NCBI RefSeq assembly: GCF_006345805.1
Contig: NC_042998.1
Span: 9,424,001 to 9,488,000 of the forward strand
Length of the DNA stretch: 64,000 nucleotides
Source: Octopus sinensis
Lineage: Eukaryota
Direction: 5' to 3'
Shown: positions 12,701 to 63,527 of the stretch, in pieces
How the letters are laid out: every line of letters begins with the position of its first letter
How positions within the stretch are numbered: position 1 is the first letter of the stretch
Program-made: the position numbers and the translations under genes
Notes under the pieces: generated by a model
What the model saw: only the letters and a program-made list of their open reading frames with translations
Told to the model about the DNA's origin: nothing
Database searches by the model: none

Positions 12701-12748
12701 TGAGTAGATTTGGTTGATGGAAACTGAAAGAAGCCCGTCGTATATATG

Positions 12749-12781
<33 letters not shown>

Positions 12782-13558
12782 TTGTGTTTGTCCCCCTAGC
12801 ATTGCTTGACCACTGATGTTGGTGTGTTTACGTCCCCATCACTTAGCAGTTCGGCAAAAGAGACTGATAGAATAAGTACTGGGCTTACAAAGAATAAGTC
12901 CCGGGGTCGATTTGCTCGACTAAAGGTGGTGCTCCAGCATGGCCGCAGTCAAATGACTGAAACAAGTAAAAGAGTAAAAAGAGTAAGTAAAGTTTCTGGA
13001 TGAAGAATATTTCTATGCCTGAGAAGAGTAGGAAGTCCTCAGTCAAAATATAAAGGAAAGAGTTGTACAGCTGCAGATAAAGAACTAGTTCTTTGCTTAA
13101 TTTTCCCTCCTCTCCGTATGTAATGTAGCTGACTGGAATCGAAATATCATGGGAAATGTTAATAAATGCGACAATGCTGAAGGATGTATGCTTCTGATAA
13201 TTAGTTTAGCTCCATTCTACCATTTAGCTTCATATCATGTGTGGTTTAGACATGCTACGTTCAATTAGCTGCTGATGGATTAATGCATGATAATGCACAG
13301 TCGAGATCACTGCCAACTCAACTGTGTAATGTTTGAAAGATTTTATCATTGCTGCAAACCTATTCAGTTTCAAGCAAGATCCAGTTATTGCATTCTGAAT
13401 TTTTTATGAAGCCCATTCAAATAATGAATTTGTTTCCAATATCTGCCTAATCTGAAACTTCACATGAGATATAGCTCTGCTTATATTTTGTGTGTTTTAG
13501 GAATAATTTATTTTAATCTCAGCGTTGACTGACCACTCATTTTGATTCCATTATTATT

Positions 13559-26638: not shown

Positions 26639-26681
<43 letters not shown>

Positions 26682-38442: not shown

Positions 38443-38482
<40 letters not shown>

Positions 38483-39872
38483 CATATATACGACAGGCTT
38501 CTTTCAGTTTCCGTCTACCAAATCCACTCACAAGGCTTTGGTCGGCCCGAGGCTATAGTAGAAGACACTTGCCCAAGGTGCCATGCAGTGGGACTGAACC
38601 CAGAACCATGTGGCTGGTAAGCCAGCTATTACCACACAGCCACTCCTGCGCCTCTAGCTCATATGCTTTCAGAACACTCATCTCTACTGTTGATTGGTTC
38701 ATCTAAATAACAAAAACTATCAAGAGTGTACTTGATGCATTTCATTGTGACATTAGCACTTGATAAGTTAGCTTGTCTCCAGCAAGTCAGAGTCCTTCCT
38801 ACCCTAGATTACATTGCTTATTTCGTATTGATAATTCAGGTTATGATTGAAACATGACACTGTGGTTATATCTTATCATATCTACTATGTTAATAGAAAA
38901 AATCGAAAGAACAGAAGATACACTGAAAGTGCTCCTTGTTAATGAAGAACTTTTACTTTCTACTTTTGTTACTTAACAATTCTATGTTGCTTTGTGAATG
39001 AATAAAAAAAAGTGGTGATCAAAATACTGAGCAATATTAAGTTATGTCCAATGTTGAACTGGACCTTGTTCTTGGGAACTGACAAAATATTTTATAAAAG
39101 AAAAAGAACAGTTACTTATTGCTGGATGAAGTAAGACATACTCAATAAAGTTGTGTCAATTACAGTCAAATAACTCCTTTCGCTTGTGCTTGCAATTCAG
39201 TTATCCACTTCAAATGTTTTGAAGTGAAAGTCAGTTACTGTGTTTTCTGCAGAAGATTGGTACGATTTGTTTGCCTTGGTGGTAGTGAAGAAATATTTCA
39301 AGTATTTAAAGATGCTTCAGAAAATATATGTGCATTTCTTCACTGCTACCAAGGCAAACAAATCGTACCAATCTTCTGCACTTATTTTATGCAGAAAACA
39401 CCGTGACTGACTTTCACTTCAAAATATTTGAAGTGGATAATTGAATTGCCAGCACAAGTGGGAGGAGTTATTTGACTGTGGTGTAATTGACACTTTTTAT
39501 TGAGTAGATTTTACTTCATCATCCAGCAATAAGTAAACTGTTTGTTTATAAAATATATTTCACCTGTTCCCAAGAACAAGGTCCAGTTCAACACTAGACA
39601 TAACTTAATATTGCAAGATATTTTGATCACCACTTATTTATTCATTCACAAAACAACATAGAATTGTTAAGTAGTAAAAGTTCTTCATTAAAAAGGAGCA
39701 ATTTCAGTTTATCTTCTGTTAATTCGATTTTTTTATTAACATGGTAGACGTAAGATTTAACCAGTGTCATGCTTCAATCATAACCTGAATTATCAATATG
39801 AAATAAGTAATGTCATCTAGAGTCGGAAGGACTCTGACTTGCTGGAGACAAGCTAACTTATCAAGTGTCTGT

Positions 39873-39915
<43 letters not shown>

Positions 39916-42900
39916 ATCTTCATCATCAGTTTACTTCTACTTTCTGTACTAGCATGGATTCGATGGGTCATCACGGCCCAAGTTAGTTTTTGTGAGTTAT
40001 TGCCCTCATAGTCAGGTCAAATGATCGTGTCACTAATACATTTCATTTTTTGCATGGTAATGGTTAGATGCCCTTCTTAACTCTAACAAATTTTCAGAGT
40101 TTTCAGATTTTCACCTCATTTTATTTAATTTGGTATTATTAAAGTCCTCTAATAAAAAGATGTCTTATTGTTGAATTTGTGGCTAAAAGTTCAGTCAGCC
40201 ATTTAAAATATCTTAAATGGCTTACAAACACCTTCCACGCTGCAATTGTTTTCGTTTCAGCACACGATCTCAGATCAAATCACTTGCTATGCAAGTACAT
40301 CTCCGTAATTTAAAATATCAGCAACTCAGAAAACCAGTTGTTAAAATTTTGGCAGTGCAATGAACCATTTCTTAAAATTTAACATCTTACCAACCCAGTT
40401 GTTTAGATTTTGGCTGTTTGGTGAATCAGTTGTTAAAATTTTAGCAATTCAGCAAAGCAGTTAAAATTTCAACTGTAAATGAAGCACTTATGTAAAACAA
40501 ATTATGGCAGCTCTTCACTAGTTATGTCCCTTGGCCGTTTTGGTTCAAATTTTTATTACTTTGACTTGTTCATCCATGGTTGATAAAATAAATAACCATT
40601 CCAATACAAGGGTTCAGTTTAATTAAATAGGACCACCAAAAAATGTATTGCTGTGTTAGAAATCCTTGTTGTAGAATATTTTGCAAATACAAAGCACAAC
40701 TTCTTTGCTGTGTGTTTCCTGCTGTGAGACGTGTGTGCTTCAGTAAAAATTTGAGTAACTTGTAAAATGCTATGAAACTATCAGTTTGTAGAAGATATTG
40801 TTTTTACTTTATATTTATCCTTTAATGCTAATAATTGCTAAGTCAACCATATTACCTTTCTTTGTTCCCAATACTAGGTGAGACTGGAACTGGATGGATG
40901 ATGAACAGATCACCCGAAGGCTTTAAGTTTTTTTACAATGTAAATACTGGAGATTACGCTTGGGTTCGGAATGACACGATCATAAAAGATTATTCTATTC
41001 TGACAAAAGAGGAAATCCAGGTAATTATGAGTTTTGTTCTGATTTTTTCCTAACTATTTTAATGTAGACCAGCCCATTTCATTGTGCATAATTAGACAAT
41101 TCATCAGATTGTTGGTATTTCTGTTTCATCATCATCATCATCGTTTAACGTCCGCTTTCCATGCTAGCATGGGTTGGACGATTTGACTGAGAACTGGCGA
41201 ATCAGATGGCTGCACAATGCTCCAATCTAATCTGGCAGAGTTTCTACAGCTGGATGCCCTTCCTAACGCCAACCACTCAGAGTGTAGTGGATGCTTTTAC
41301 GTGCCACTGGCACAAGGGCCAGTCAGGCAGTACTGGCAACGACCATGCTCAAATGATGTTTTTTACATGCCACCTGCACAGGACCCAGTCCAGAGGCACT
41401 GGCAACGACCTTGCTTGAATGTTTTTTCACGTGCCAGTAAGACGACACTAGTAACAATCATGCTCGAATAGTGCTTTTTATGTGCCACCGTCACGGAAGC
41501 CAGTTAGCTGCTCTGGTAACAATCATGCTCGGATGGTGCTCTTAGCGCTCCACTAGCACAGATGCCAGTCATCGAATTTGATTTCAGTTTCACTTGCCTC
41601 AACAGGTCTTTGCAAGCAGAGTTTAGCGTCCAATGAAGGAAAGGTGCACATAGTTTACATTCCTCCTCTCATCATCATTTAACATCCATTTTCTTTGCTG
41701 CATGGGTTGGACGGTTTGACAGGGGCTAGCTAGGCAGAAGACTGCACTAGGCCTCACTGTCTGTTTTGTCAAGCTTTTTACAGCTGAACTCCCCTCCTAA
41801 CACCTTACAGAGTTTGTGCAATTTTGGTAAACATTTAACAGTCTTCTATATCCAAACTAATCAGATTTAAATATCTGCTATTATACTGCTTTAATTCAGA
41901 GAAATATATATTCCTTTGATCAGCCTTTCCTGTAACAAATTCAACTTTGGCACAAGGCCAACAATTTTGAGGGAAGGATATTAGTTCATTACACCAACCC
42001 CAGTACTTGTCTGGTACTTTATTTTATCAACCCAGAAGAGGTGAAAGGCAAAGTTGACCTCGGTTGGACTTGAACTCAGTGTGTAAAGAGTCAGAAAAAA
42101 TACCACAAAGTATCTTTTCCAACACTCAAACAATTCCGCTGGTCCACTGCTCTTGCATTTCCTACAATAAATTTCATATTTGTAATTTCTAGCTCAATCT
42201 CTACTTTATATATACACTCTTTTCTCAAAACTTTCCACCCCCATCCCAGCTGTATAGCTCCTTCACCCTTGACCACCTTTTCTTTCCTTTTTCCTGCCCC
42301 TTTCCCTCATTTCCCATTCCACTCTTTCTCTTCCCCCTCTCTTTATTCCTTTCACTGTCCCAGTTTAACAATTTTTTTATTGTATGTTGATATTGATTAT
42401 CAGAAATATTTTCAAATTATTTGTAAAATCCTACATTTCAACAAGTACTAGCATTTGTATCACCTGTATTGCATTTGTTAGGTCAGTTACATTGAACCCC
42501 TCTCTATCCCATCTCCTAAAAATTGCTCTGGCCTTGTGTCAAAATTTGAAACCATTATTACTATTATTATGCAAACCAAGAAACTGCTTTATTTATAATA
42601 ATAAAACCGAAATTCTGTCTGTCCGTCTGGGACCCCCTGTATCTCAGCCTACATTTGCTCAACAGACATATTATACCTTTTTTGGAATCAGGATGATCCC
42701 GGATTTGAAAATCTGCCCGTCATTTGGTTCTTGAACATTCAGCATTGGGATCTGATTTTAAAAGCACTTGGGTTGCTATTTCTAGCATGTAAAGCTTGGC
42801 TTATTCACACCATCTTGGTTGACGTTTGTCAGATGATGTCAGAGACCAAGGGGGAGATAAATGATATTCGCTTCATTAATTTTACGTCAAGATAAGAACT

Positions 42901-45900
42901 TTGGGACAAATTGGCCAACAGTTGGAATACAACAGAATGATTGCATTGCAAAAGTAATTCTCATCTGTCTTTAACCTGTGATCAAACACCACTGGAGCCT
43001 ATAGTCATTATAGATGTATTATAGTCATGTCATTTAGCTCTTTAGTTTTCAGCCACAAACCCAATTAGCCCTCAGTAGGAGCTAGGTTAGAAGTCCGCAT
43101 GGAGTGCGGCTTTTAAGCTAGTAGTAAATAAGAGTAATAATAATGGTTTCTGATTCGGGCAAAAAAAGAGAAAAAAAAAATCAGTTATTTTAAGGGGAAG
43201 GGGTTTACTCAGTACCATTGAGCCCATTACAAATAAAGTACTAGTCAAATACTAGGATCAATGTTATCAACTAACACCCTCCCACTAAAATTGCTGGTCT
43301 TGGTCCTAAATCAGAAGCTATTATTATTAAGGTAGTGAGCTGGCAGTACATTAGCATGCCAGGCAAAATGCTTAGCAGCATTTCATCAGTGTTTATGTTC
43401 TGAGTTCAAATTCTGCTGAGATCAACTTTACCTTTCATCCCTTTTGGGGTCAATAAAATGAGTATCAGTTAAGTCCTGGGGCTGATGATATTTGGGCTCC
43501 TCTCCCGAAATTTTAGTAGAAAGGATTATTATTGAATGAGAGTGTAGTACATGCCATCAAAGTGACACCGGGGTCCAAATATACAAAGCCCAGTATACCC
43601 ATCTGATAAGGGTACACCAGGCACATGCATCACAACTATATGTGCATAACATAGTGATCTCATCAAAATAAACAGTGCATGACTCTGCAAGTAGGGCCCA
43701 GTTAGAATTATCTTCAGGTCATGTAGTCCATCCTATTCAAAAGGTCTGTGAATAAGGTTTGTTTAAGAATGTTGAATGAAACACCCATGTTTCCAGAGGT
43801 GAATTATTCAAACTCCAAAGAATTCCTTTCAACAAATGGCTATGATGCTCCCCACTACTTCTGCCTGTGATCAGAGATGTACATATCGTCAGCCACCAAG
43901 GGACATGCTCAACTGGTTATGGTCAAACAACTGACAAAACAAATCTATGGTATTGAGCAGAATATTTGCTGTAGCCCATCTTTTATACCAAGATGATTAT
44001 TATTATTATTATTATTATTACTACTACTACTACTAGGTTGGAGGATTAGAAGAAACATTAAAACATTGAACAAAATTCTTTTTGAGATTTCTTCCTCTGG
44101 CATTTTACAATCTTTCTTCAAACCCCACCAAGGTCAGGTTTGCCTTTCATCCTTCAGAGGTCAATAAAAGAATGTCTTAGTCTAGTTCTGGGGTCATAGT
44201 AATCAGCTAATCCTCCCCATTTTAAAATTACTTTTATCTTTTTTTTTTTTTTTACTTGTTTCAGTCATTAGATTGCAGCCATGCTGGAGCATCACCTTGA
44301 GGAATTTTTAGCCAAATGAATTGCCCCCCCCCTGTTTTTTGGGGTTTTTTTTCTTATAAATGCCTATGATTGTGATGGCAGTGGAGTGCCTGCTAGTCAT
44401 ATCACCCACCCTAACTCCTAACCCCTTCCAAAATAATGGTAAAAGACTGACTGTGTACTGTCATTGTACTCGTACAGAAAGAAAAGGGCAATTGAACAGA
44501 CACATGCCTTTTAGAATTAGTTCAGGGTTGGCAGTGAGGGTGGTAGGTGGGCTGCCAACACATGAAACGACTGGTTTAGATGAGGGATCTGAACCTAAGA
44601 TCCTAATTTCACCCCTGGTCAACCAAGGCTTTGTGAGAAATTTGGTTGATAGAAACTGTGGAGAAGCCCATTTGTGTGTAAATGCATATAGATGTGTTTG
44701 TTGTGTATGTGTTTGTATTTGCCTCTTAGCACTTAACTGTGTTAGGTTGTTTATGTTCCCTCGACAGTTTGGCAAAGAATGACAGAAGAACAGAAGTTAA
44801 AAATTATTAACTAGGGTCAATTTAATGGTCTAGAACTTTCAAGGCTTATTTGAGGCAGTCCCCTAGCTTAGCTATAAACCAATGACTGAAATAGATAATA
44901 AAAAATAACTTCACAAATCAATAAAAACTGTCTATTTGAAACAAGTGAAAAAGAAATTTATTTTACTTTAAAAAAAAAAAAAAATTGTTTCTGATTCCAG
45001 AGTGTTTTAACTGAAATTCAAGAAAGCTATGACCGAGAGCTCTTGTTTAAGGCAAATGAAGGTTTCATTGTGTTGGTCCAAGCTTTAATTCGTGGTTACT
45101 TGGTGAGGAAATCATTTAATGACCGCATTACCTATATCAACTCTCAAACACCAGCAATTACTAAAATCCAGGTAAATTTTCTTTTTTTTTCTTTGTAAAT
45201 TGGAAAGTAGAGTTTAAATTATTACAATTCTAGCATGGCTTTGCTATTTACTGTAGTTGTTACTAGCAGCTTACAAATTATGGCTTACAAATAATTCCAG
45301 AAAATAATTTTTACAATATGATAAATGCCTTTAGTTTTCTAAAACTTTATTATTACAAATATTTCTATCGAGTTAAGAGAAGTTAGTAACGAAATGACGA
45401 GTGTTTGCTGCCTTTAATTTCTGCTGTCTCTTTAAAGTTGTACAGTGGAAACCTGCACCGTTGTCTGACTTCGCTTTCTTTTTTCTATATCTTCCTTTCT
45501 CTTTCTCTCAACTTTTTTTTCTCTAATTTTGTTTATCTTGCTTTATTTCAGGCTTACTGGAGAGGTTCTCGTCAACGAAACCTTTTCAAAACCAGAAAAC
45601 AGTTCTTGAAACAGAATGGTCCTGCTGCCGTTAAGGTAAATATTTTGCATTCATCTTATACACCAGGTTTATAAACCTTGTAAATGTACAAAGCTTAAAT
45701 TATATTTCCTTAGACACTAATGAACCAAAATTAATTTCTGAAATGTATTAATTATCAGAAATACTGTCTGCATTATATCAAGATTTCTAATTTTGATCAC
45801 AACAGTATTTGATAATGAACTTAGGAAGTAATATAATCATGTATTTTATCATGCTTAAGGATTGTATGAGGAATCGGTGTTTAAGGATTTTTTTTTCTGT

Positions 45901-51300: not shown

Positions 51301-54300
51301 TTGTGAACAACCAAATATGTTACTCCTACTCTATCATCTTCAGAATGGCTCAGTTTTCTATTGCCTTATAACTTCCTCTTGTAAATATCACAAGAAATTT
51401 CACTTCTCAACTGTTTCCCCATGTAAGCTTTATTTACATACAACCTAATATTTTACTGTGGAGGCGCAATGGCCCAGTGGTTAGGGCAGCGGACTCGCGG
51501 TGATAGGATTGCGGTTTCGATTCCCAGACCGGGTGTTGTGAGTGTTTATTGAGCGAAAACACCTAAAAGCTCCACGTGCTCCGGCAGGGGATGGTGGTGA
51601 TCCCTGCTGTACTCTTTCACCACAATTTTCTCTCACTCTTACTTCCTGTTTCTGTTGTACCTGTATTTCAAGGGGCCAGCCTTGTCACTCTCTGTGTCAC
51701 GCTGAATATCCCCGAGAACTACGTTAAGGGTGCACGTGTCTGTGGAGTGCTCAGCCACTTACACATTAATTTCATGAGCAGGCTGTTCCGTTGATTCGGA
51801 TCAACCGGAACCCTCATCGTCGTAACCGACGGAGTGCTTCCATTCCAATATTTTACTACAAAGAATTAAAATAAAAGACTCACAGAAAAGCATTTGCTGA
51901 TAAGTTCACAACTTTTTTTTTAACATTTTCTTTTTTGTGTCTGTTACAAAAGTATAAAATTTTATTTCAACTGTAAATTTTCTGAACATTCTTTCCGATT
52001 TATAGGATGTAGTATTTCACAATCACAAACTGAAGAAACATGCTGAACGAACTGGAGCAATGACTCGGGGACTGAAAGCCCTGAGTAAAGAAAGTCGTGG
52101 AAAACTGGATGCCTACCAACATTTGTTCTATTTGTTGCAAACAAATCCAACTTACCTTGCAAAACTGATTTTTGAAATGCCCCAAAGCAAAACAACCAAG
52201 TTTATGGAGTCTGTCATATTTTCCCTGTTTAATTATGGTTCTAATGCTAGAGAAGAGTTTCTCTTGTTACGCTTGTTCAAAACTGCCTTAGAAGAAGAAA
52301 TTACGTAAGTTACCATTTTTATCTAAAGAATTTGATTATATTTGCTTTTAATATTTAATAGAAATTTCATACAATTTAACATTTTTTTTTTTTTTCTGCA
52401 TAAACTTAATGAACTTTTTTTTTCAGTAATATAATATAATAGTATACCTTTGTATCTCCTTTGCCTATTACATCTGTTACCTACACTTATTTTCTTGTCT
52501 GTAGTGTAGTTGCTGTTTAAGTTTGAGCATTGATTGTTGTTTAAATACATTGAAAGAAACAAATGTTCAGATATTTAACAAGAATTTGTCATAAAATTGC
52601 TGGGAAAGAAAGAAATCTGTAGGAGTACTATGTTTTTATATATATAAAACATCTGTGGGTTTCGCTAATGACTCGCAAGCCTCTCTCTTCTTTATGGTTT
52701 TTGTCCGGAGCACCCATCTCCATCGCATCTGCAGGATCCCCAAGATCGGTAGATCAGTAACATTAATGCAGTTGATGTTTTTTCTTGAACAGCTGCTAGT
52801 TGAGGGATGCAGGAAGGAAATTCCAGAAGTGAGGCTTGCAAGGAGGTAAAATATGAATAAGAATTGTCGTGATTTTTAGGTCCATCAAAAAGATGCATAT
52901 CTGTTGACAGTAGTCCACTAAATTTCTGGTGACTGTGTACTACATTTTTGTTGTGTTTGAGTAACTGAACACACTAATGGCTAAAAGTAAAGCTATTGTA
53001 AACATTTTAACTGTCTTCCACAAATATCTTAATAGGAGCAGTTCTGATTTTAACAGTATTGTACACAGTTCCCATGAACTAAAATCACTTATAAAGTTTG
53101 TATTTTTGAGATCATTGCATTGTCTCTTACTGTATTATATTATAAAGAAAAAGTGGTTAAGGATCTGATATACTAACAGGGATGTGAGTGTCACCTTGTC
53201 AAGTATGTTATAGATTTTCATTGTCTATCAACAAAAATAAAATAGGTATCATTCCTATTTTACTGTAATATACTTGGCATTACTAAAAGATGTCTAGCTA
53301 TAAAACATCTGATATTTCTTGCTATGTTATTAGCACTGCTACATCACTGAAAATTTATTTTGTGAGTCACTTAAAATACATGTAAATTTATGTTTAAACC
53401 TTCTTTAACTTGAAGGTTAAAGAGTGTTTTAATTTTATGCCGGAAATGGAAGGCCTTGGTGTCAGCTGTCTTAACCAGCTGACACTTTATGCTAATGACT
53501 TCAAACCTGTAGGCTTATTCAAGCAACATGTATTCTAAGACATACAAAACAGAGAACTACTGGTTATCAATCAGTCTGTAATGGTAGGCATGTAAATTGC
53601 TCAAATATTTTGTCAATATTTTACAATACAAAATTTAATGGAACTGCAACAACTTTAGAAATAAAGCTATTAATCTGAGAATTTTTACTTATGCACTGAG
53701 AGACAAGCTGTTCTTAAAAGAATGATGTGTAGAGGATTGTAATAGTTTAATTAGGATTAGTGAAATGTTTGCCAGCTATTAATATACCATTTTACACAAG
53801 ATGCTTATGCTTATTCTCCAGCTTCATTAAGAATGAATTCAAAAGCATGAATTTTGATACTTTATATTTCATGTGACCTTTTTTTTCCTTTTTTTTATTT
53901 TGAGTTTTGGTGAATTTTCATTCGGGATTTTATTTAATATTCTCTTATTAAGGATGGTAATCATCATTGTGTTCTCATATTGGATGTAGAACTTTCTTTG
54001 GAGTCCTGTTGTTCCTTTCACACACAACTTTATTTAGAGAGCACTTTAATTAGAGAAGTTGACTGCTTCTTTTAATCCTCTTTCATTTAACTGAACTTAT
54101 TTATATAGTGCGTGTTAATTTGGGGGATAAATATTTTATATTTGGGACAGAAGTGGGGATTAATTCTAAAAGGATTAAGGTTTGTACAATATGTACATTA
54201 TTTAATGTAAATATTGGCAGGAGGGATTTATTGAAATAAAGTAAATGGCTACTGCAGTTTGTTGATGAGGATTTGGATGACGTTTGAAGAACATAGATTG

Positions 54301-57300
54301 TTGTGGTGTATTAGACCTAAACAAAAAAAAAAATACATTGATGACCAATGGAAGTTAATGAGTTTTACTAATCACTCAAATACTCTCTTTGATCAGATTA
54401 TAATTGGGAAACACTATCTTAATCTCTCTTTTTTTTATGTGTGTGTATGTTATAATTGCCAATTTTTTAATATTAAAGAAAATGTCTTGCAATATGAAGT
54501 GAAAAATTTTTAAATTATAAAAGATAGGAAATGGTTCACTTCTCTGAATATTAGTACAAGTTAATTAGCATCTTTAAAAATTAATGAAACAAAACAAAAT
54601 TGAAAACAGTTTTGTATAAAATACTCTTCGTTTGTGTTGTATTTTATCTAATTACATTTCTTTAAATATTATTGATGTGGGACAAATCAATTTGTGCTAA
54701 TAATTTAATTCATGTGATAATTTCTGCCCCATTTTTCATTCATAGGAGAATGTAAGTAAACTCTTTCATCTTCCGCACGATCCTTGCCAACATTGTCACT
54801 ATGTAAAACCCCAACCATTTTGCATGATTAAACCAGTTTTTGTCTTAGAAATCCCATATTAGTAAAATGTCCACTTAATAATTAATATTTCTTTGTTATA
54901 TCCAAAGCATGTTTACCAACACAATTCCAGAGCTACCATTGGTGCACACCTACCTAAATTTTATTCACTCCTTACACACACACATACACACAAACTAACT
55001 ATTATTCCATGCAATATCTCTTGAGGATTAACCTTGAAATTCAAAGTATTGCGTTCAAGAGTACTGGGGTATTTTTCTCTTAAATATATAGAGACAGTGT
55101 AATGTGGTTAAGAAGCTCACTTCATTGACATAGCATTTGATTGAATCCCACTGTGTGACATCTTGACTTAGTGTCTTTTACCAAAGCCTTCAGTAAAATA
55201 AATATATACACACACTATGTATGTGTGTTGAATTGTAGGGCTGGTGCAACAGCTAAGTCATCACACAAAAACAACTTGCATATGGTTATAGCTATCTGAT
55301 GTTCTGGTCACACCCCTTTATGCTCAGGCGAGCTTTGCCACTTTCTCCTTCAAATGTACATAAAATATGTGCCAGAATTCTGAAATCAATGTATTTGACT
55401 AAAAATTTTGATGCTGTGCCCACTATGGTTACAGTTCAATAACTTAGTAAAAGAATAAGGCAATGTAAGTTCATAGAGCTATTATTTTACTGATAGATGA
55501 CTTCAAACTTTTATAATTTCATCCTCAAAACATGTTTAGTGTTAGATATTGAGTACTTATTTTATGGATCAAATAGTATGCTTACACTCATAATGACTGT
55601 GCACACACAGGCACATGCACAAAACTATGTTAATACAATAATCCCTCAGTACATTTTAATTTAAATGTAAGTATTCACTATTATATAATTATAATTTACT
55701 TTAACATCAGTACTTTTTGTCTGAACTTGAAATAACTATAAGTTTGATATTTGTATGTATTTTTCTTTTCACCATGATAATTGTAAAATATTGATGGTTT
55801 CAATGGTCGATACAAAAGCCTTAAAGAATAAATAAAAATACAATTATTCTTTGCTGAGTACAATATTTAAATAGTTAAGGTGCTGAATAATTGATCTGTT
55901 AAATCAAGCTCTGTTATCAGGAATGCTTTGAGGTTTTAGACTAGGTATATTTTCCCAACTTGCTTAGACCAAATTCAGTTTCAGACTTTTGGTATTTATT
56001 AGGAAAAACATCTAGCTATGAAACATTTTATTTTATCATTAGATTTATAAAAATTACCAGGGCACATCCCAAAATGAAACAATATTTCCAAATATTTTAC
56101 TTCAAATTTTAACTCTGAGAAAATTATACTACTAACCACTTAATTGGTGGTTGTGAAGGTGGGGCATAATTTATTGGCCATGCAGTGTACATTGAAAAAT
56201 ATATTGAATAGTATTTTAATCAAACTTACAAAAAATTTTCATTTTAAGTGTGTGTTGTTTTTTGTTTTACATATTTTGTTGATTTGTATTTCATATGCAG
56301 TTTCATTTGTTTTCCTTTTAAGCAATGAGTGCTAATCAAAGTATATCAATATTAGTGTCCTTAAACACTGATTTTTGCTTATTCTGAGTGTGCTTTTGTC
56401 AGTTTTTATATGTAGTCAGTAGAATTGAACATTTTCTACATTCTATAAATCAACCCATATTATCTCATAACCTTATAATAATCAAGAGTAAACTACTTTT
56501 TTATGTTGTCAAAGGCTATGCAGTATTTTTTTTTCTATTAAGTGTGGGTTTGTCCAGTAATGACTTAGACCTAGTCTAACTTAATAGCATCAGCTGGTAA
56601 GCAAATGAGGTTTCCTTTGCTCATTCACACAAGATTTTGTTTGGGATCTGGCTTGTTTATCTAAGATTGTTTGAAGACAGATTCATGGAATTGTAATTTG
56701 AATGTTAGGATATATTTTTTTTATGGGAATAAGATTAGTTATGTATTGTGAATGGATCTTAGCAAAATGTGTGAGAATTAAAGCCCCAGTTTTGAAAGGT
56801 TTAGTCATTGATGCAGTACATTGTGAGCTGATATGACCCTGTTTGTCAAAGATAAAAACTGGCTTGATGTAATCCTCCTCCAAAAAAACAAAAACTCAAT
56901 ATCCAGCATGCTGTGTATTTTCCAAGTAATTGTTGTCAATTTATAATTTCTTGTTTGGTATAGTGTGACCACAGAAATAATGCTTCAATTGGTAACTGGA
57001 AAATATAGTAGGGAATAGAATAACAATTGGGTTTCAAGCTGAAATTTAAAACCAAGAGACACATTTTGGTGTTTTGAGTAGATTTAGACCATTTTGTCAA
57101 CAATAACCTAATTACTCTTAATCTAGCATACATTTTTTTTTCATGAGGAGATGGTATTATTTTCATTTATCCAGACAGCAAGTTGGCAGAACCATTAGCA
57201 ACATTTCTTCCAACTCTTTATATTCTGAGTTCAAATTTTGCCATGGTTTAGTTTCACTTTTCATCCTTCCAAAGTCAATGAAATCAGATGTAGTCAACTA

Positions 57301-59031: not shown

Positions 59032-62000
59032 GGTATAAAAATTATATATAAAAAGGGACGAGAACGTGAAAAACACAAAAAACGGACGGGTCATTCGAAG
59101 CCTTTAATCTTCAGTCAGGAACCGGATCATCATAGCAAATTTTGGCTGATTAATCCTGATATTGCTCCGATGCGGCCAGCCCCAATGAAAAACTAAGCTG
59201 CGAGCATTAGATTTCTTGGAAAAAGGATCGAATGTAAACGAAACAAGGACAGAAAAACGGACGATGCCACACGAATATAAATACAAAAAACAAAAACAAA
59301 AATAAAAACAAGAATGGTAATAACAGGACAACAGCAGGTGTCTTACGACTTTAGACAAATTTAACTTATATATATATAAAGCTAATTCTTAACTTTAATT
59401 AGAATATTAATTTGTATGTTAAACAAGAGAAAATAATTATTGTATGTTGACTCTGAATGCTATATTATGTATGTGAATTTGACTGTTGTTTAAGAGTTAT
59501 TTGTAAATATAAGTGTGTGTTTGTGTGTGCCTATGCCCTGATGTAGCTTATGCATCTTTTCCTAAACTACAATCTAACTTAAAAGACCTAGGAAATGCTA
59601 ATTAACACCAAAATGATAGCTAATGTCATTATCAGTAATCATTAATAAACTTTTGGTTAATTATTGTTAGAAAATGGTGTTGCATATTAAAATCCATGAA
59701 ATAAAGTATTTATGACTTTCTGTTTCTACTTATGTAAAATGAACCTTTTAGCAGAGAGTACAACTGGTAGTTTTATTTTTGTAATTTTCTCGTTTGATAA
59801 TATTTTTTTAATTTCTGTTTTAACTTTTTTTTAAAATTAAAGTGGGTCTTTTTTTTCAAATTTGACATAACTTGACATTCTCAGTATTTTCACTCACTTG
59901 TTATACACTAATAATTTTGTTTTAAAATTTTTTTTTTTTTTTTCGTAAAAGGTGAAGTCACTATGTTAGAAAACTAACTAATAATCAGCTATTACTTTGT
60001 AAAATATATTTTTGATTTGTTTTTTTTTTAGCTCTAAAGTTGACAAGATGTCAGACATTGTAACAGGGAATCCTATGATTATTAAGATGATTGTTGGCTT
60101 CAACAGGTAATTGACTGATTAATTTCTCAATTTAATGCACTTAATCAGTTGTGATTTGTGTATTAATTGTTAGAACCTTTGACCAAAATTTACCAATTGC
60201 TTTTCATAAATTTCTAGAATAGAAAAACAAAAAAAAGACATATCTCCAGTTTTATATGCACCATTAATACTACTTTCCAAAGGGACATTAATTTACTTAG
60301 AAAATAATAAAAGTCATGCTCTGCCTAAACTGTTTCAGTGACTCTAAGGATAAGAAGTTGCATCATATCTTGTCTCATAAATGATGTTTTGATATTTCGA
60401 AATTTTAGTGACACATAAAATTTATGCTGTTTTAATGCAAGAGATATTCTTAATGTCTCTGCTCCTTTTGTATATTTTGCAATAATTTGAAGAATAAAAG
60501 ATCAGAAAAAAAAACAACTATCAAGAAATTGTTGCTGTAGTTGTCCTAACATTATAAATGTATCATCTGTCAAATGTTTTCCTGCCTTCTTACTGTATGC
60601 ATACAAAATAAAGCCATTATAATCTTCATCTCATCATCATCTTCGTTTAGCATCCGCTTTCCATGCTAGCATGGGTTGGATGGTTCAGCTGGGGTCTGGG
60701 AAGCCAGAAGGCTGCACCAGGCCCAGTCTGATCTGGCAATGTTTCTACGGCTGGATGCCCTTCCTAACGCCGACCACTCCGTGAGTGTAGTGGGTGCTTT
60801 TTACGACAAGTGTTAAATAACAGAGCATGATGGATCTTTCACTAGATATAATTTTTGGAAGGTAAAGTTTTAAGAAAACTGTATCTATATTTTCAAAAGC
60901 TTCATCTCCCCATAGTCGTATTGTCAAAGCAAAGTATGATAATATAAATCTGAATAGGTTTTTTTTCAACTAGTCAAATAATGTGGCTTGCTTATGTGGG
61001 GCTAAAGTATTATATATTTATCTATGATTAGAAATCACATCTATTTTGTACAGATTAGATTGAATTCATATATGTAGATATAGTCTGTTTCTTGCACTAG
61101 ACTTTTGGTTTTTTAAATGCTAATACTAATTTTGTTAATCAAACAGTTACATATATCATTAGTCAATTAGTTATGTGATTATAGACATAAAAACAAAATA
61201 AAGTATGAATAATTAATAAAATTCATTTTAAACTACAGAAATCCAAGGGGACAAAGTGCTTTACGTGACCTTTTACATCCATTGATCAAAGAGGTTCTGG
61301 ATGATAAAGAATTTTTAATAAACACAAATCCTGTAGAAGTATACAAGAGTTGGATAAACCAGACAGAATCCCAAACTGGACAGGCCAGGTATTGAGAACA
61401 TTTTTGCTTTTAGTCATTTTTTCCATAGCCATTGTTTCTCAAAATAATATAATACTTCAGTAATTTTTAGTAAAATTTTAATACATATTTTGTATTTCCT
61501 TTGATTTTTTTTTTTAACTTTTCAGTAGTTTCTAGACATATCTCTAGACAATGTAACAGTGAAGTAGTTCATTTATATTGACTGATATATTATTGTACAG
61601 GATGAAATGGAAGAAATAATATGCAGTAATGTAATAAAGCCATTGTAGTGGACATTACTGGCAAAATGGACCATAGTGGGTGGCAACTTACCGAAACCCA
61701 CCCAAACCATGATGGCATGGAGTAAAATATATGCATGAGATAAAGTCTCTGCAATCCACCATTATAAGTTATCTGTCTAGGAGAGCAATAACTCTGAAAA
61801 CTAAACTGATGCAGGCTACAAGAGACTCTTCAGTCCTCCCAATTGAGACAACCTCTTGAGTGCCGATAGTGTAATAAAATGCTTCCTCTTCAAACTGTCA
61901 GACTTACACAACAACAGAGTTGGCCTGTTGCCATTGTTGTTGTTTGTGTCAGCTGATATGGATCATCATCATCATCATTTAACATCTGCTTTCCATGCTG

Positions 62001-63011
62001 GCCTGGGTTGGACATGCTGAATATCAAGACCTACCCAACCCATGCCAGCATAGATAAAAATAAGACCTAAAATGATGACTGCAAGTCCAACTGAAATTGT
62101 TTATTGCTTCAGTTTAAAGTTTCAGTTTAGCCTTTGGTTTTTATACAGCAGAAACAATCCCACCAAACATCTCCACAGATAATGCCATTTTAAAGAACTT
62201 TCTTTTGATATTCTAACAAAAAAAGTTTAAAGTGAAAGATAATTAAGTCTTCATCATCATCATTTTAATGTCCACTCTTCCATGCTTGCATGAATTAGAT
62301 GGAAGTTGTTGAGGCAGATTTTCTATGGCAGGATCCTCTTCGTATCACCAGCATTCACATGTTTACAAGCAAAATAATATTTCCTCATTGCTGGACATGT
62401 CAGAGAAGAATAGAAATGAACATCACCACTTGTATGATGGTGACACTCATTTACAGCTGTCATTTGATGTCCAGACAACACACACACACTCTCTCTCAAG
62501 ATGTTTCCATCTATCAAGTCCCTTCACAAGGACTTGGTTGGCCTGGTGCTATCATAGAAGATACTTATCCATGGTGCCATGTTGTGGGAGTGAACCCAAA
62601 CGCATATAGTTGGGAAGCAAACTTCTAAACCACTGTGAAAAGTGAGCCATCAGAAGTTTTCTTGTATCCATTGAGATTATGAAAAAGTATGGTTATTCTA
62701 AATCACATTTTATAGACATTCTTATTTGTCAGAGATCGTTATTATATATTTTCTTAAATATTTATTACATACTTGGCTTTTTTTTTTTTTTGTCAGTGTC
62801 ATATTTTAAATTGTTTGTTTGATTATTTCTCTCTGGACATGTTTTAACGAGTTTCATGGTTGTTTTTCAGTGGTTTGGCTTATAATGTAACTTCTGAGCA
62901 AGCTATGAAACATTCAGAAGTGAAAAGTCTTATTCAAGAATCAATAGTAAAGTTACAAAAAGCCACAGACAAGTTCTTGATAACAATCACCCAATCTTTG
63001 GACAAAATTCC
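2069..63011 (+). CDS. IQGAP1: IQGAP-family scaffold (IQ motif-containing GTPase-activating-like protein), internal 21-exon part of a spliced gene
   Basis: 21 exons joined at GT-AG sites with consistent phases give one open frame (2806 nt). It is colinear with human IQGAP1 as recalled: HAAIIAINDAI, DVYDELLTQAEIQG, WLEEIQ, WW-like segment, four IQ motifs, VVRKFVHLLD, NQQLENDLNQMDIKIGLLIKNRITLQ, GLKALSKE..AYQHLFYLLQTNPTYLAKLIF, VTGNP, SWINQTESQTG. Paralog number is nominal. Confidence 0.96.
3124..4282 (+). mobile_element. Decayed, internally deleted mariner (Tc1/mariner) transposon
   Basis: TA at 3122 and 4283; TIRs GGTATCAAAAAGT(A/T)CCTG(A/G)ACTA. From ATG 3311: KLGKSATETL...EDE*SGRPVTS with stops. 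C-terminal YSPDLAPENFDLFPKMK...FQKWQKCWDWCIAAQGDYFKGD matches the mariner YSPDLAP motif. Confidence 0.9.
3969..4219. repeat. Insertion containing a spacer-less palindrome, flanked by 12-bp direct repeats
   Basis: TTAAGTTTATAA at 3957-3968 and 4220-4231; arms 4029-4120 and 4121-4212 are reverse complements with one mismatch. Confidence 0.9.
4955..5305 (+). mobile_element. Diverged SINE, family AB
   Basis: TGGCTGTGTGG/GGTTCAATCC tRNA boxes, CTTGGGCAA segment, GACTGAAAC end. Confidence 0.75.
5365..5560 (+). mobile_element. Diverged family D element
   Basis: GGTATTAGCAAGGGCATCAAGCTGTAGAAA core and CCAACCTATGCCAGCATGG end. Confidence 0.65.
7886..8142 (+). mobile_element. Family D element
   Basis: Near-identical to 1697-1973; long (GAT)n tail. 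Confidence 0.88.
10012..10184. mobile_element. hAT-like MITE
   Basis: TIRs CACTAGTATGGCTA / TAGCTATGCTAGTG; imperfect 8-bp TSD GATACATA/GATATATC. Confidence 0.55.
10210..10393. mobile_element. piggyBac-like MITE, family M2
   Basis: TTTA|CCCTTAACTGTGAAA...TTTCACAGTTAAAGGG|TTAA; second copy at 21809-21992. Confidence 0.7.
11272..11546 (+). mobile_element. Family D element
   Basis: Two subrepeats, core and (GAT)n tail. Confidence 0.88.
12578..12985 (+). mobile_element. Full-length tRNA-derived SINE, family AB (central TA/TG microsatellite)
   Basis: GGCGCAGGAGTGGCTGTGTGGTAAG...GAGTTCAGTCC head, CTTGGGCAAGTGTCTT segment, (TA)n(TG)n, 3' half ending GACTGAAACAAGT(AAAAGAGT)n. Confidence 0.9.
14106..14308. 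mobile_element. hAT (Charlie-like) MITE
   Basis: TIRs CAGTGGTTTTCAACC / GGTTGAAAAGCACTG (14 of 15 match); 8-bp TSD CTCTAGGG/CTCTAGAG, fitting the NTCTAGAN target. Confidence 0.9.
15032..15380 (-). mobile_element. Family D element
   Basis: (TCA)n at the left end, reverse complement of core, three subrepeats. Confidence 0.88.
16785..16914. repeat. Near-perfect 130-bp palindrome built from microsatellites
   Basis: GAATACTTTTCTCT(GT)n(AT)n...ATTTAAATTAA-TTTT-TTAATTTAAAT...(AT)n(AC)nAGAGAAAAGTATTC. Confidence 0.9.
16918..17335 (+). mobile_element. Full-length SINE, family AB
   Basis: Same structure as 12578-12985. Confidence 0.9.
19209..19405 (+). mobile_element. SINE family C, 5'-truncated
   Basis: Highly similar to 1-233, with a small internal deletion. 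Confidence 0.85.
19445..19509. repeat. (CA)n microsatellite
   Basis: Uninterrupted CA run. Others: (GT)n about 18641-18686, (AC)n about 39874-39912, (TA)n about 63533-63569. Confidence 0.95.
19740..20095 (+). mobile_element. RTE-clade LINE fragment (RT C-terminus, frameshifted)
   Basis: Translates in part as CWFGQVVCMEDG...KCLMIQEKQTCRIGRLMKT, like the RTE consensus LRWFGHVxRM...GRPxKTW. Confidence 0.7.
20295..20514. mobile_element. piggyBac-like MITE M1, ending 27 nt upstream of exon 2
   Basis: TCAA|CCCTTTAA...TTAAAGGG|TTAA; internal sequence matches 1076-1296. Confidence 0.8.
20542..20632 (+). CDS. IQGAP1: IQGAP exon 2
   Basis: ttttgtttcag|TTC ATT...AAT G|gtgagt; FIDPNSTYEADVYDELLTQAEIQGYINQVN; phase 0 to 1; follows an 18.3-kb intron; missing from the ORF track. 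Confidence 0.95.
20760..21161 (-). mobile_element. Non-autonomous Helitron
   Basis: On the minus strand it starts TC and ends CTAG, sits between host A and T, and has a GC hairpin (CCCGG-CGTTGC-TCGGG, 20772-20787) just before the 3' end; no TSD. Confidence 0.82.
21591..21751 (+). CDS. IQGAP1: IQGAP exon 3
   Basis: tatttttcag|TT TAC...AAA AAG|gtaaag; VYTSLSWVNDALQKMDRDSLINALTSGFLSLKNVNLNNIDFYMKCLQDTLELKK; phase 1 to 0. Confidence 0.92.
21809..21992. mobile_element. piggyBac-like MITE M2, diverged
   Basis: TTAA|CCCTTTT...TTTCACAGTGAAAGAG|TTAT; internal similarity to 10210-10393. Confidence 0.62.
22724..22862 (+). mobile_element. SINE family C, 3' half
   Basis: GGTCAACTTTGCCTTTCATCCC...AGCCCCTTGTGGGTAATAAAGAAAT. 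Confidence 0.82.
23103..23318 (+). mobile_element. Family D element
   Basis: Core and (GAT)n tail. Confidence 0.85.
23513..23922 (+). mobile_element. Family D element with four ~62-bp tandem units
   Basis: Units start at 23519, 23581, 23643, 23706; then core and long (GAT)n tail. Confidence 0.9.
24473..24563 (+). CDS. IQGAP1: IQGAP exon 4
   Basis: ttatttgcacag|AAC AAT...CAG A|gtatgg; NNNGGDVFLDKDEVQAAINLANQEADVEYQ; phase 0 to 1. Confidence 0.92.
25190..25560 (-). mobile_element. Family D element, longer subfamily
   Basis: Reverse complement of core, with diverged subrepeats; shares its 5' extension with 41126-41650. Confidence 0.85.
26252..27079. mobile_element. Nested AB SINEs: a minus copy split by a plus copy (about 26477-26885)
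   Basis: Order on + strand: 3' half (-), (CA)n, full copy (+), (TA)n, 5' half (-). Confidence 0.88.
27361..27770 (+). mobile_element. Full-length SINE, family AB
   Basis: Same structure as 12578-12985. Confidence 0.9.
28973..29173 (+). CDS. IQGAP1: IQGAP exon 5
   Basis: tttatcacag|AG CAA...AAA A|gtaagt; KQVAVKNINLAIENTDAEQLMKALQNPAAQLSPIDDTAPMLYCDEFCSIRQEKQDSLEYHEIFNAVK; phase 1 to 1. Confidence 0.94.
31724..31878. mobile_element. MITE M1, internally deleted
   Basis: CTCTTTAGCATTTAAA...CTAAATGG|TTAA. Confidence 0.65.
32290..32453 (+). CDS. IQGAP1: IQGAP exon 6
   Basis: ttattttag|TT CTT...TTT GAG|gtgagt; ILSAIAAINSAVDRRNSQATFTALSDPNAHIPTLDFELSEKYQNCLAKEKQKKFE; phase 1 to 0. Confidence 0.94.
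32894..33350 (-). mobile_element. Family D element
   Basis: Reverse complement of tail and core; four subrepeat motifs. Confidence 0.85.
33611..33692 (+). CDS. IQGAP1: IQGAP exon 7
   Basis: tttattatag|TTA CCT...GAA C|gtaagt; LPCEQLTHHEIVMAVEKVHQQVQQEHE, matching IQGAP1 ...VNLVVQEEHER; phase 0 to 1, needed to bridge exons 6 and 8. Confidence 0.92.
33900..34123 (+). mobile_element. Putative Penelope-like terminal fragment with a minimal hammerhead-like motif
   Basis: CpG-containing island ending in (AT)n; motif GTTT-CCAACGA-AGAGCTCCGCTC-GAAACGTT-AAAC. Class is inferred from the motif only. Confidence 0.4.
34375..34585. mobile_element. MITE M1, diverged
   Basis: CCCTTCAGCATTTAAAA... internal match to 1076-1296. 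Confidence 0.68.
35153..35546 (+). mobile_element. Full-length SINE, family AB
   Basis: Ends about 130 nt upstream of the exon 8 acceptor. Confidence 0.9.
35679..35842 (+). CDS. IQGAP1: IQGAP exon 8
   Basis: catttcag|GA GTT...GCA TTG|gtaact; RVCAIGTINDAISNGDEQAVLAALQLPAAQLQNVRDRLAHQYMVMLVNKKNKKAL; phase 1 to 0. Confidence 0.94.
36041..36131 (+). CDS. IQGAP1: IQGAP exon 9
   Basis: cacatttcag|CAA TCT...GAA A|gtatat; QSQDEDTLLWLEEIQETIVEANEDEEKAVE (IQGAP1 QDESAVLWLDEIQ); phase 0 to 1. Confidence 0.94.
36340..36790 (-). mobile_element. RTE-clade LINE fragment
   Basis: Minus-strand MLHGSETW motif (RTE LLYGxETW) followed by a degenerate WYRHVM. Confidence 0.75.
36866..37033 (+). CDS. IQGAP1: IQGAP exon 10
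   Basis: ctattttcag|TG TCT...CTG G|gtaata; MSLGIKDINANLNQDSSDVLLQSLQCQPVQLQNLRSSCGNIYMEKLRALRSEKETL; phase 1 to 1. Confidence 0.92.
37860..38235 (-). mobile_element. RTE-clade LINE fragment
   Basis: Minus-strand pieces ELLPLL...SAMLH...LERNEVSILRWM...LREELGVREIKQSVQE, homologous to 36340-36790. Confidence 0.7.
38255..38651 (-). mobile_element. Full-length SINE, family AB
   Basis: Reverse complement of the AB structure. Confidence 0.9.
38757..39867. repeat. Long inverted repeat (fold-back): two arms of about 535 bp and a 39-bp spacer
   Basis: Left arm 38757-39294 (CACTTGATAAGTTAGCTTGTCTCCAGC...GTAGTGAAGAAAT) is the reverse complement of 39334-39867 (ATTTCTTCACTGCTAC...GCTGGAGACAAGCTAACTTATCAAGTG), with scattered substitutions and small indels. 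Confidence 0.93.
40878..41020 (+). CDS. IQGAP1: IQGAP exon 11 (WW-like domain)
   Basis: ccaatactag|GT GAG...ATC CAG|gtaatt; GETGTGWMMNRSPEGFKFFYNVNTGDYAWVRNDTIIKDYSILTKEEIQ; phase 1 to 0. Confidence 0.94.
41126..41650 (-). mobile_element. Longest family D copy
   Basis: Tail, core, up to five diverged units and a unique 5' extension; no tRNA head. Confidence 0.85.
43330..43525 (+). mobile_element. SINE family C, diverged
   Basis: GAGCTGGCAG head, TTCTGAGTTCAAATTC, CTTTCATCCC core. Further diverged copies at about 41955-42090 (-), 44035-44220 (+) and 57172-57350 (+). Confidence 0.75.
45001..45171 (+). CDS. IQGAP1: IQGAP exon 12 (IQ1, start of IQ2)
   Basis: ctgattccag|AGT GTT...ATC CAG|gtaaat; SVLTEIQESYDRELLFKANEGFIVLVQALIRGYLVRKSFNDRITYINSQTPAITKIQ; phase 0 to 0. 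Confidence 0.95.
45552..45635 (+). CDS. IQGAP1: IQGAP exon 13 (IQ2)
   Basis: ctttatttcag|GCT TAC...GTT AAG|gtaaat; AYWRGSRQRNLFKTRKQFLKQNGPAAVK; phase 0 to 0. Confidence 0.95.
45909..45980 (+). CDS. IQGAP1: IQGAP exon 14 (IQ3)
   Basis: gttgaatcag|TTA CAA...GAC AAT|gtaagt; LQAFTRMYLTRKRYRERLKYFKDN; phase 0 to 0. Confidence 0.95.
46785..47120 (+). mobile_element. Family D element inserted in a (TA)n tract
   Basis: (TA)n at 46756-46783 and 47121-47133 on either side. Confidence 0.85.
48454..48523 (+). CDS. IQGAP1: IQGAP exon 15 (IQ4)
   Basis: gatttttcaag|GAA AAT...CTT G|gtaagt; ENSIVKIQAFVRSTLARHDYKSL; phase 0 to 1. Confidence 0.95.
48736..48931. repeat. Inverted repeat with arms of about 87 bp and a 22-bp spacer
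   Basis: ATTATAAATAAGGGC...CCACATGAAATATT (48736-48822) versus AATATTTCATGTGG...GCCCTTATTTATAAT (48845-48931). Confidence 0.92.
49135..49515 (-). mobile_element. Diverged SINE, family AB
   Basis: CACTTGCCCAGG, GGATTGAACC and ACCACACAGCCA reverse-complement motifs. Confidence 0.7.
49693..49779 (+). CDS. IQGAP1: IQGAP exon 16
   Basis: aaatttttag|TT TAT...CTT G|gtaagt; VYDDNPPLSVVRKFVHLLDASDADYAEEL; phase 1 to 1. Confidence 0.96.
51117..51238 (+). CDS. IQGAP1: IQGAP exon 17
   Basis: tgtattttag|AA CTA...TTA CAG|gtaaga; ELQKLRQQVGSEIRSNQQLENDLNQMDIKIGLLIKNRITLQ; phase 1 to 0. Confidence 0.96.
51458..51846 (+). mobile_element. Full-length tRNA-derived SINE, family E, with 11-bp TSD
   Basis: Head GGCGCAATGGCCCAGTGGTTAGGGCAGCGGACTCG...GGTTTCGATTCC (A and B boxes); (TTCCA)2 tail; TSD AATATTTTACT at 51447-51457 and 51847-51857. 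Confidence 0.92.
52006..52304 (+). CDS. IQGAP1: IQGAP exon 18 (start of GAP-related domain region)
   Basis: gatttatag|GAT GTA...ATT AC|gtaagt; DVVFHNHKLKKHAERTGAMTRGLKALSKESRGKLDAYQHLFYLLQTNPTYLAKLIFEMPQSKTTKFMESVIFSLFNYGSNAREEFLLLRLFKTALEEEI; phase 0 to 2. Confidence 0.97.
54746..54751 (+). CDS. IQGAP1: Candidate 6-nt alternative microexon of IQGAP (adds Arg-Ile)
   Basis: tttctgccccatttttcattcatag|GAGAAT|gtaagt; in the phase-2 intron 18 gives AC|G AGA AT|C, frame preserved; CTAAT branch-like motif at 54697-54701. No expression evidence. Confidence 0.5.
58800..59003 (-). mobile_element. SINE family E head with a different 3' sequence
   Basis: Reverse complement matches about the first 180 bp of 51458-51846, then diverges. 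Confidence 0.85.
60032..60106 (+). CDS. IQGAP1: IQGAP exon 19 (GRD, pseudo arginine finger)
   Basis: tttttttttag|C TCT...AAC AG|gtaatt; TSKVDKMSDIVTGNPMIIKMIVGFNR; phase 2 to 2. Confidence 0.96.
60631..60805 (-). mobile_element. Family D element, 5'-truncated
   Basis: Tail and core only, cut at TTTTTACG. Confidence 0.87.
61239..61388 (+). CDS. IQGAP1: IQGAP exon 20 (GRD)
   Basis: aactacag|A AAT...GCC AG|gtattg; NPRGQSALRDLLHPLIKEVLDDKEFLINTNPVEVYKSWINQTESQTGQA; phase 2 to 2. Confidence 0.96.
62250..62630 (-). mobile_element. Old composite of family D tail and AB head remnants
   Basis: (TCA)n-TTTAATGTCC...CATGCTTGCATG at the left end; GAACCC...GTTGGGAAGCAAACTT...ACCAC at the right; similar composite at about 50700-51050. 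Confidence 0.55.
62871..63011 (+). CDS. IQGAP1: IQGAP exon 21 (GRD)
   Basis: tgtttttcag|T GGT...ATT CC|gtaagt; SGLAYNVTSEQAMKHSEVKSLIQESIVKLQKATDKFLITITQSLDKIP; phase 2 to 2; gene continues past the window. Confidence 0.96.
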
Positions 63012-63527
63012 GTAAGTTACCAATTTTCTTGAATATTTAAGGATTCTTTACCAATGAAAATAAAGAAAGAAAAAATATTTTTTTCTTGCAATGCTTACAA
63101 TTTAAAAATTATTCTATGATTGTTTTAACAATGCACAAGTTTTGTGAAAGTGGGAAGGGTCAATAGATGTTACCCCCAAAATATTACAGTTTAGACATTG
63201 TAGTTTATGCAAGTTTGACATACAGAAAAATTATCAGCTTGGAAACAATTGGAACCAAAACTAAATACTAGAAGGTTCTGTTGCCTTAGTTATTCCCATA
63301 ACGTTTAAAATATTCTGTATTGCATAAATAAAACTTTTATGAAGTAATTTGTTTTATTACAGAAAAGTATTTTATGGCTGATGTGAAACTTCAATATTTA
63401 ATATATAAACATGAAAGCAAAGCAAAAATTCTACCTCCATGCAATTACTTCATTTCAATACAAATCTCTGATCAAATCACTTTGCAAATCAATTCAACAC
63501 TGAAAATAAAAACAAAGCATCCACTTA

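Follow-up and report, generated by a model that had tools for sequence, protein, structure and literature searches.

Is a hexamer that lies between an intronic AG and a perfect splice donor a functional exon, or a coincidence of common splice signals? The question is raised by a 64,000-nucleotide (nt) stretch of the Octopus sinensis genome (contig NC_042998.1, positions 9,424,001 to 9,488,000 of the forward strand; referred to here as the window). The hexamer, GAGAAT at window positions 54746 to 54751, lies in a gene for IQGAP, between two exons that encode the GTPase-activating protein (GAP)-related domain (GRD). We consider it highly likely that these six bases are a genuine, evolutionarily old, protein-coding cassette microexon of IQGAP, a reading suggested chiefly by the recurrence of such an exon in seven further assemblies, where it lies within the orthologous intron.

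Homology places the element within this gene. With two IQGAP-like open reading frames (ORFs) lacking introns (L015 and L016) as queries, tblastn recovered collinear exons from 2068 to 63012 on the plus strand, so that the window holds most of the gene. The GRD structures of IQGAP1 (3FAY, E=2e-46) and IQGAP2 (5CJP, E=2e-43) were matched by the two exons on either side of the microexon, in agreement with the original prediction, which had assigned the element to this domain, and Pfam RasGAP scored above its cut-off at 61240 to 61386 (41.4 bits) and at 62872 to 63012 (30.1 bits). On these matches, the gene is an IQGAP. The upstream constitutive exon (52006 to 52304, plus strand; supported by its ORF, by tblastn with the L015 and L016 ORFs, and by the 3FAY match) encodes DVVFHNHK...LFKTALEEEI and ends at 52304 with ...GAA GAA GAA ATT AC, in which AC is the first two bases of a split Thr codon. 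The phase 2 intron of 7,727 nt that follows opens with GTAAGT (52305 to 52310) and closes with AG (60030 to 60031). The downstream constitutive exon (60032 to 60106, plus strand), delimited by sequence and by the GRD structure match, starts with C TCT AAA GTT GAC... and encodes (T/I)SKVDKMSDIVTGNPMIIKMIVGFN.

Within this intron and on the same strand, GAGAAT is bounded by an acceptor AG at 54744 to 54745 and a GTAAGT donor at 54752 to 54757. Its length is a multiple of 3 and falls in the 3- to 27-nt class of coding microexons. Inclusion would give AC/G AGA AT/C (slashes mark exon boundaries), i.e., ACG AGA ATC or Thr-Arg-Ile, with no stop codon and a net gain of Arg-Ile; the skipped form EEEIT-SKVDK would become EEEIT-RI-SKVDK (EEEIT-RI-SKVDKMSDIVTGNP). 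The predicted junction strings are GAAGAAATTAC-GAGAAT-CTCTAAAGTTGAC for inclusion and GAAGAAATTAC-CTCTAAAGTTGAC for skipping. Upstream of the acceptor are a pyrimidine-rich tract, cccatttttcattcat (54728 to 54743; 76 to 80% pyrimidine versus 50% at background AGs, with 80% in the last 20 nt ahead of the microexon AG), a UGC motif (54725 to 54727) that lies 17 nt from the AG and has its first base 21 nt ahead of the exon start, and a candidate branch point, CTAAT, at 54697 to 54701, with a second CTAAT at 54648 to 54652. The last AG before the acceptor is at 54608 to 54609, which leaves an AG-free zone of 134 nt (54610 to 54743); within the intron, just 0.3% of the spacings between consecutive AGs reach that length. 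The original prediction had named the AG, the hexamer, the donor, the CTAAT and UGC motifs and the pyrimidine tract, a 7.7-kb intron with phase 2 flanks, and a stop-free EEEIT-RI reading; every one of these was recovered, at the same positions and in the same frame.

The acceptor is in addition a tandem one, TAGGAG, in which use of the second AG (54747 to 54748) would leave a 3-nt exon. The same YAG-GAG arrangement is seen in the window (54741 to 54751) and in its two nearest relatives among the comparator contigs described below (L006:13094-13104 and L008:12498-12508), where the second AG would yield the exon AAT or AAC and one added residue. GAG is a poor acceptor, though a 3-nt AAT version is conceivable.

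Signals of this kind may co-occur by chance, and the simplest alternative is a pseudo-exon: an AG, six bases and GTAAGT co-located in a long AT-rich intron and never spliced. GTAAGT occurs four times in the 7,727-nt intron, in which GAGAAT is the only strong candidate microexon. When the intron was shuffled under a first-order Markov model, at least one in-frame AG...GTAAGT candidate of 3 to 27 nt with a pyrimidine tract arose in ∼7% of the shuffled introns, and AG-N6-GTRAGT was present in ∼17%. With the introns of the window totaling ∼60 kb, the candidate is therefore not beyond chance when the window is taken alone, and a pseudo-exon is further favored by the genomic nature of all the support. 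What separates the two explanations is the orthologous intron in other genomes.

Orthologous exons were drawn from the loci of a protein search and from a scan of JGI metagenome contigs, each extended downstream by up to 10 kb. The intron after ...EEEI occupies the same phase 2 position in all orthologous loci, and in seven assemblies besides that of the window it holds a 6-nt exon between AG and GTRAGT. These exons are cttcag/GAGAAT/gtgagtat in ERZ26273219 (L006:13099-104 and L007:13325-30; reads L-R-I), gtattag/GAGAAC/gtaagtat in ERZ25073285 (L008:12503-08 and L009:12661-66; M-R-T), ttctctag/GCGCAT/gtgagtat in ERZ25073254 (L013:11143-48; R-R-I), tttatcag/ACGAAA/gtaagttt in ERZ26222911 (contigs L011 and L012; L011:13084-89; R-R-N), ACGAAT in JAAUXT010046689.1 (L069:10363-68; R-R-I), ACGAAT in JAAUYA (L067:1868-73 and L068:2597-602; R-R-(I), the downstream exon being off the contig), and aacag/ACGAAT/gtaagtgt in ERZ26693581 (L079:6459-64; R-R-I). 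Five hexamers (GAGAAT, GAGAAC, GCGCAT, ACGAAA, and ACGAAT) thus account for all occurrences, the donor is GTRAGT in eight of eight assemblies, window included, and the exon sits 25 to 50% of the way into introns of 0.8 to 9.6 kb.

The surrounding intron is not conserved. The 200 nt on each side of the microexon gave no alignment between species, and Rfam gave no match above noise in the intron, so the conserved island consists of the exon and its splice sites only. Unalignable introns, combined with 65 to 85% identity of the exon peptides, indicate that the positive assemblies represent distant lineages and make a single genome, or very closely related ones, an unlikely source of the comparator contigs. 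In a crude tree of upstream-exon peptides, L006 and L008 cluster tightly with the window (SLFNYG... type), and the remaining positives are scattered among other invertebrate-type sequences. Contigs from the same species or its closest relatives (L001 to L005) stop ∼300 to 700 nt past the upstream exon, short of the microexon.

The recurrence far exceeds the chance level. The exact core AG-GAGAAY-GTRAGT arose in ≤3e-4 of shuffled L006 or L008 introns, and a relaxed version, AG-N-(Arg codon)-NN-GTRAGT, in 0.3 to 0.9% of shuffles per intron. Across 51 loci with a usable intron (∼94 kb), the relaxed version was matched 10 times in six assemblies, haplotigs counted, against 0.21 matches expected from the shuffles and ∼0.3 to 0.4 from its observed frequency in other parts of the fetched loci (both strands, 1.2 Mb); L079 joined the set after this count. 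A pseudo-exon would have to recur in seven further assemblies within introns that otherwise cannot be aligned, and we regard it as extremely unlikely. It is strongly supported that the comparative data, rather than the sequence of the window, raise the predicted microexon above chance. The proposal that the hexamer is a real frame-preserving microexon thereby gains strong support, and the search for a conserved island, suggested originally for cephalopods, proved positive over a wider span.

The substitutions among the hexamers point to a coding role. At the middle codon the assemblies have AGA, CGC or CGA, each of which specifies Arg, so that all changes at this codon are synonymous; on this comparison, the Arg codon is evidently under purifying selection. 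The same observation bears on a second alternative, in which the element is a noncoding recursive or decoy splice site that aids processing of a long intron, the six bases reaching the mRNA never or only transiently. The element does share with recursive splice sites and recursive splicing exons (RS-exons) a long host intron in which an acceptor is followed immediately by a strong donor; the intron is long in most species (6 to 9.6 kb), and there are mRNA-like contigs, discussed below, without the 6 nt. Unlike recursive sites, however, AG and GT lie six bases apart in all species, and the junction AC/GAGAAT regenerates no 5′ splice site. A constant in-frame length with synonymous exchange among AGA, CGC and CGA would be expected from selection on coding and not from selection on an RNA signal, and the exon is kept in introns of only ∼0.8 to 1.3 kb (L069 and L079), where recursion has no purpose. 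Recursive or decoy use is thus very unlikely, and a coding microexon is the preferred explanation.

If the microexon is coding, is it included always or only in some transcripts? Five contigs of other species (L015, L016, L018, L020, and L023) carry long IQGAP ORFs that run uninterrupted across positions split by introns elsewhere and are most simply interpreted as assembled mRNAs. All five read EEEIx-SKV without the insert, and L015 clusters by sequence with L006 and L008, two contigs from genomes that carry the exon. The existence of mRNA-like contigs without the insert, one of them closely related to carriers, argues for an alternative cassette rather than a constitutive exon. Gene predictors do miss 6-nt exons, and it could be that in this lineage the Arg-Ile form is the normal protein and the skipped model an annotation error; we consider this improbable given the L015 sequence, and given that the tandem (weak) acceptor context, the long AG-free zone and the UGC motif are typical of regulated exons. 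From these comparisons the microexon is probably an alternative cassette, and the skipped form, which to judge by these contigs exists and is abundant, is probably the common isoform.

Six nucleotides are too short for exon definition, and recognition would instead probably depend on the perfect GTRAGT donor together with the long AG-free zone, the pyrimidine tract and, close to the acceptor, a UGC, an architecture that would correspond to the SRRM3/4-type (eMIC) route to neuronal microexon activation. In flies and mammals, eMIC/SRRM-dependent exons show extended AG exclusion zones, UGC near the 3′ splice site as well as lengthy pyrimidine tracts (PMC8797185). The AG-free zone and the pyrimidine tract upstream of the IQGAP microexon conform to this pattern. 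Drosophila eMIC exons have weak 5′ splice sites (PMC8797185); the strong 5′ splice site found here is unlike these and agrees with the mammalian eMIC pattern. In the other assemblies measured, AG-free zones were 35 to 60 nt long compared with 134 nt in the window, and across assemblies pyrimidine content upstream of the microexon was 0.56 to 0.76 compared with a background of ∼0.5. UGC occurred ≤30 nt from the acceptor in seven of eight assemblies, but its frequency at random intronic AGs is 0.3 to 0.5, which makes the motif supportive rather than decisive. The cis features fit the SRRM/eMIC neural-microexon code, and from them we infer alternative, neural usage and eMIC dependence.

The microexon is not universal among IQGAP genes. 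No equivalent was found in the vertebrate-like IQGAP1/2/3 loci (L050, L054, L057, L062, and L064; introns of 0.2 to 1.2 kb), in the large group from L027 to L053 whose next exon starts SMTGPMTDIITGNP (the SMTGPMTD group), in the LFDTALKEEI group (L024 to L028), or in L010, L014, L019, L076, and L078, whose introns are all <1 kb; the gutless-worm-type and coral-type loci examined were likewise without it. Two weak variants were left unclassified: a 3-nt form only, cttag/AAT/gtgagtcc, at L021:1505-1507, and AATGAT/gtaagtaa in L077, which reads T-M-I. Two sequence irregularities were noted at orthologous positions. In L079 (7100 to 7260), a contig of 2x coverage, the exon 3′ of the microexon is spread over two frames (IVTGKPNGR followed by a stop, and GNPMVVKMIVSFNR), a split most likely due to an indel in sequencing and not to a genuine shift of frame. 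In the protein match P0063, the called ORF reads through a short open intron at this position (EEEIQ-SVVVAYWCLLALHFFISPLFRA-KVFKLNDIITGNP), which implies that the intron here is highly variable in length.

Several observations weigh against reading the hexamer as a coding cassette microexon. The distribution is patchy, the exon being missing from vertebrate-like, SMTGPMTD and several short-intron loci. Support for the microexon comes from genome sequence. Querying a 5.8-billion-protein database with an RI-containing sequence returned the insert in 0 of 99 protein matches, and the junction is spanned without it in P0001, P0003, P0004, P0006, P0008, P0063, P0094, P0098, and P0099; the 99 matches are almost all exon-level ORFs and animal transcripts are barely sampled, which renders this result uninformative rather than negative. 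Among the splicing signals, the CUAAY branch-point motif is seen in the window only and is not kept in the other positive assemblies, and the enrichment of UGC over its background is weak. Finally, the only structural model available, that of the homologous fragment P0098, is of low confidence (predicted local distance difference test [pLDDT] score of 51) and is a weak guide to secondary structure.

What would inclusion do to the protein? Splicing in the six bases would complete the split junction codon, add the invariant Arg and open a second split codon, placing the insert at the C terminus of the helix ahead of the finger loop that bears the residue equivalent to Thr1046, one helix turn away from this loop. 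The flanking exons align with the human IQGAP1 and IQGAP2 GRDs (3FAY and 5CJP) over ∼100 residues without gaps other than the two-residue gap of the insert, which falls at K1035/S1036 of human IQGAP1; unlike the gene in the window, human IQGAP1 and IQGAP2 have no residues at this position. In the P0098 AlphaFold model, the insertion point is the last turn of a long helix, ...LFKTALEEEV-MKK, followed by a loop, a short helix and the S/T-G-N loop. In the RasGAP fold, the helix corresponding to LFKTALEEEV leads into the finger loop, and the order of elements in the model fits this fold. Between the insert and the VTGNP Thr lie ten residues, SKVDKMSDIV, the distance that had been predicted. This Thr, at the place of the arginine finger (..IVTGNP..), is encoded within 60032 to 60106 as SKVDKMSDIVTGNP and aligns with T1046 of IQGAP1; where a RasGAP would have its arginine finger, the human IQGAP1 and IQGAP2 GRDs likewise have the VTGNP Thr. 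Replacement of the RasGAP arginine finger by Thr is a property of IQGAPs (T1046 in IQGAP1), and the finger loop is one of three signature GTPase-contact regions (PMC9408373). Judged by its position, an insert of two residues that in every case includes Arg should move the beginning of the finger loop or change its register, bringing in a positive charge at that point, and may affect Cdc42/Rac binding or its regulation.

The junction codons offer a further possibility. In L013, L011, L069, and L079, the codon at the junction, which is AGC or AGT for Ser in the skipped form, becomes AGG or AGA for Arg on inclusion, such that the included isoform reads EEI-R-R-(I/N)-S-K and contains an R-R-x-S that is not in the skipped isoform; the junction codon of L067 probably changes from Ser to Arg likewise, the downstream exon lying off the contig. 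In the window and in L006, inclusion makes R-I-S. R-R-x-S is the textbook consensus of basophilic (PKA/AGC-type) kinases, and it may be worth testing the idea that R-R-x-S and R-I-S are consensus sites of such kinases at the first serine encoded by the following exon. More speculatively, the microexon could be an ancient arginine switch that creates a phosphorylation-gated or arginine-supplying IQGAP with altered Cdc42/Rac binding or residual GAP-like behavior, probably confined to neurons; we think such a switch rather unlikely.

The window spans roughly residues 235 to 1177 of a 1,677-residue relative and starts inside the gene; the N-terminal CH domain and the C-terminal RasGAP_C domain of IQGAP fall outside it. 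Pfam IQ was detected at 44998 to 45174 (25.9 bits; cut-off, 20.3), and Pfam WW only weakly, at 40877 to 41020 (20.5 bits, under the cut-off of 26.9). The internal IQGAP repeats, with the motif ..AI.AIN.AI...D....L.ALQ.PAA.L..., are distributed one copy per exon with long introns between them (2068 to 2247, 28981 to 29172, 32295 to 32447, 35681 to 35848, and 36838 to 37092). One dispersed repeat family, recognized by spurious ORFs of the form MDGSTGVWEARRLHQAQSDLAVFLQLDALPNANHSVSVVGAFYVPPAQVP..., has many copies in both orientations within the IQGAP introns (minus strand, 1681 to 1929, 7877 to 8089, 11251 to 11496, and 23466 to 23867; plus strand, 15070 to 15447, 32926 to 33369, and 41217 to 41471) and is probably a short interspersed nuclear element (SINE)-like element. 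A second family, with ORFs MLGGQTQTHKHTHT..IYDRLLSVSVYQIHSQGIGRPGAIAEDTCPRCHAVGLNPEPCGWLASYLPHSHS, has (CA)n/(TA)n microsatellites attached to each copy (12611 to 12802, 16861 to 17154, 26393 to 26710, and 27142 to 27591 on the minus strand and 38405 to 38620 on the plus strand). An ORF at 3631 to 3960 (plus strand), ending ...CYSPDLAPENFDLFPKMKTQLRS..., resembles the C-terminal part of a mariner/Tc1-type transposase and probably marks a DNA transposon that has decayed within one of the IQGAP introns.

IQGAPs are central scaffolds that link Cdc42 and Rac to actin and microtubules. To our knowledge, the insert site, which is under selection, has not been examined by any structural or biochemical study, and a search of full-text literature found no microexon or splice variant reported at this position of any IQGAP. 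The mode of GTPase engagement by the IQGAP GRD is still disputed (PMC9408373), and the two isoforms offer a natural pair for probing the role of the finger loop. The class of microexons and the mechanism of their recognition are already known, and the IQGAP GRD example is an addition to that class, providing a clear invertebrate entry on the short list of deeply conserved 6-nt microexons. The case, in which an AG-N6-GTRAGT island was picked out of orthologous introns that do not otherwise align, also indicates that tiny exons can be validated from genomes without transcripts.

The IQGAP microexon shares aspects of its organization with the SRRM3/SRRM4 neural microexons of bilaterians, including a length of 6 nt within the 3- to 27-nt range, preservation of frame, conservation in distant species, location on a protein-interaction domain and the encoding of a charged residue. 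Its putative assignment to that class is by cis features, and the exon is missing from every vertebrate-like IQGAP locus examined. As a functional analogue, exon 23a of NF1 may come closest, a tissue-regulated cassette in the GRD of neurofibromin that changes activity on its GTPase; in this comparison, both cassettes insert residues into a domain of the RasGAP fold. Unlike the IQGAP microexon, NF1 exon 23a is 63 nt long (21 residues), occupies another site of the domain, belongs to an active GAP and is skipped in neurons, whereas the IQGAP cassette would add two residues next to the finger loop in a domain that is catalytically dead.

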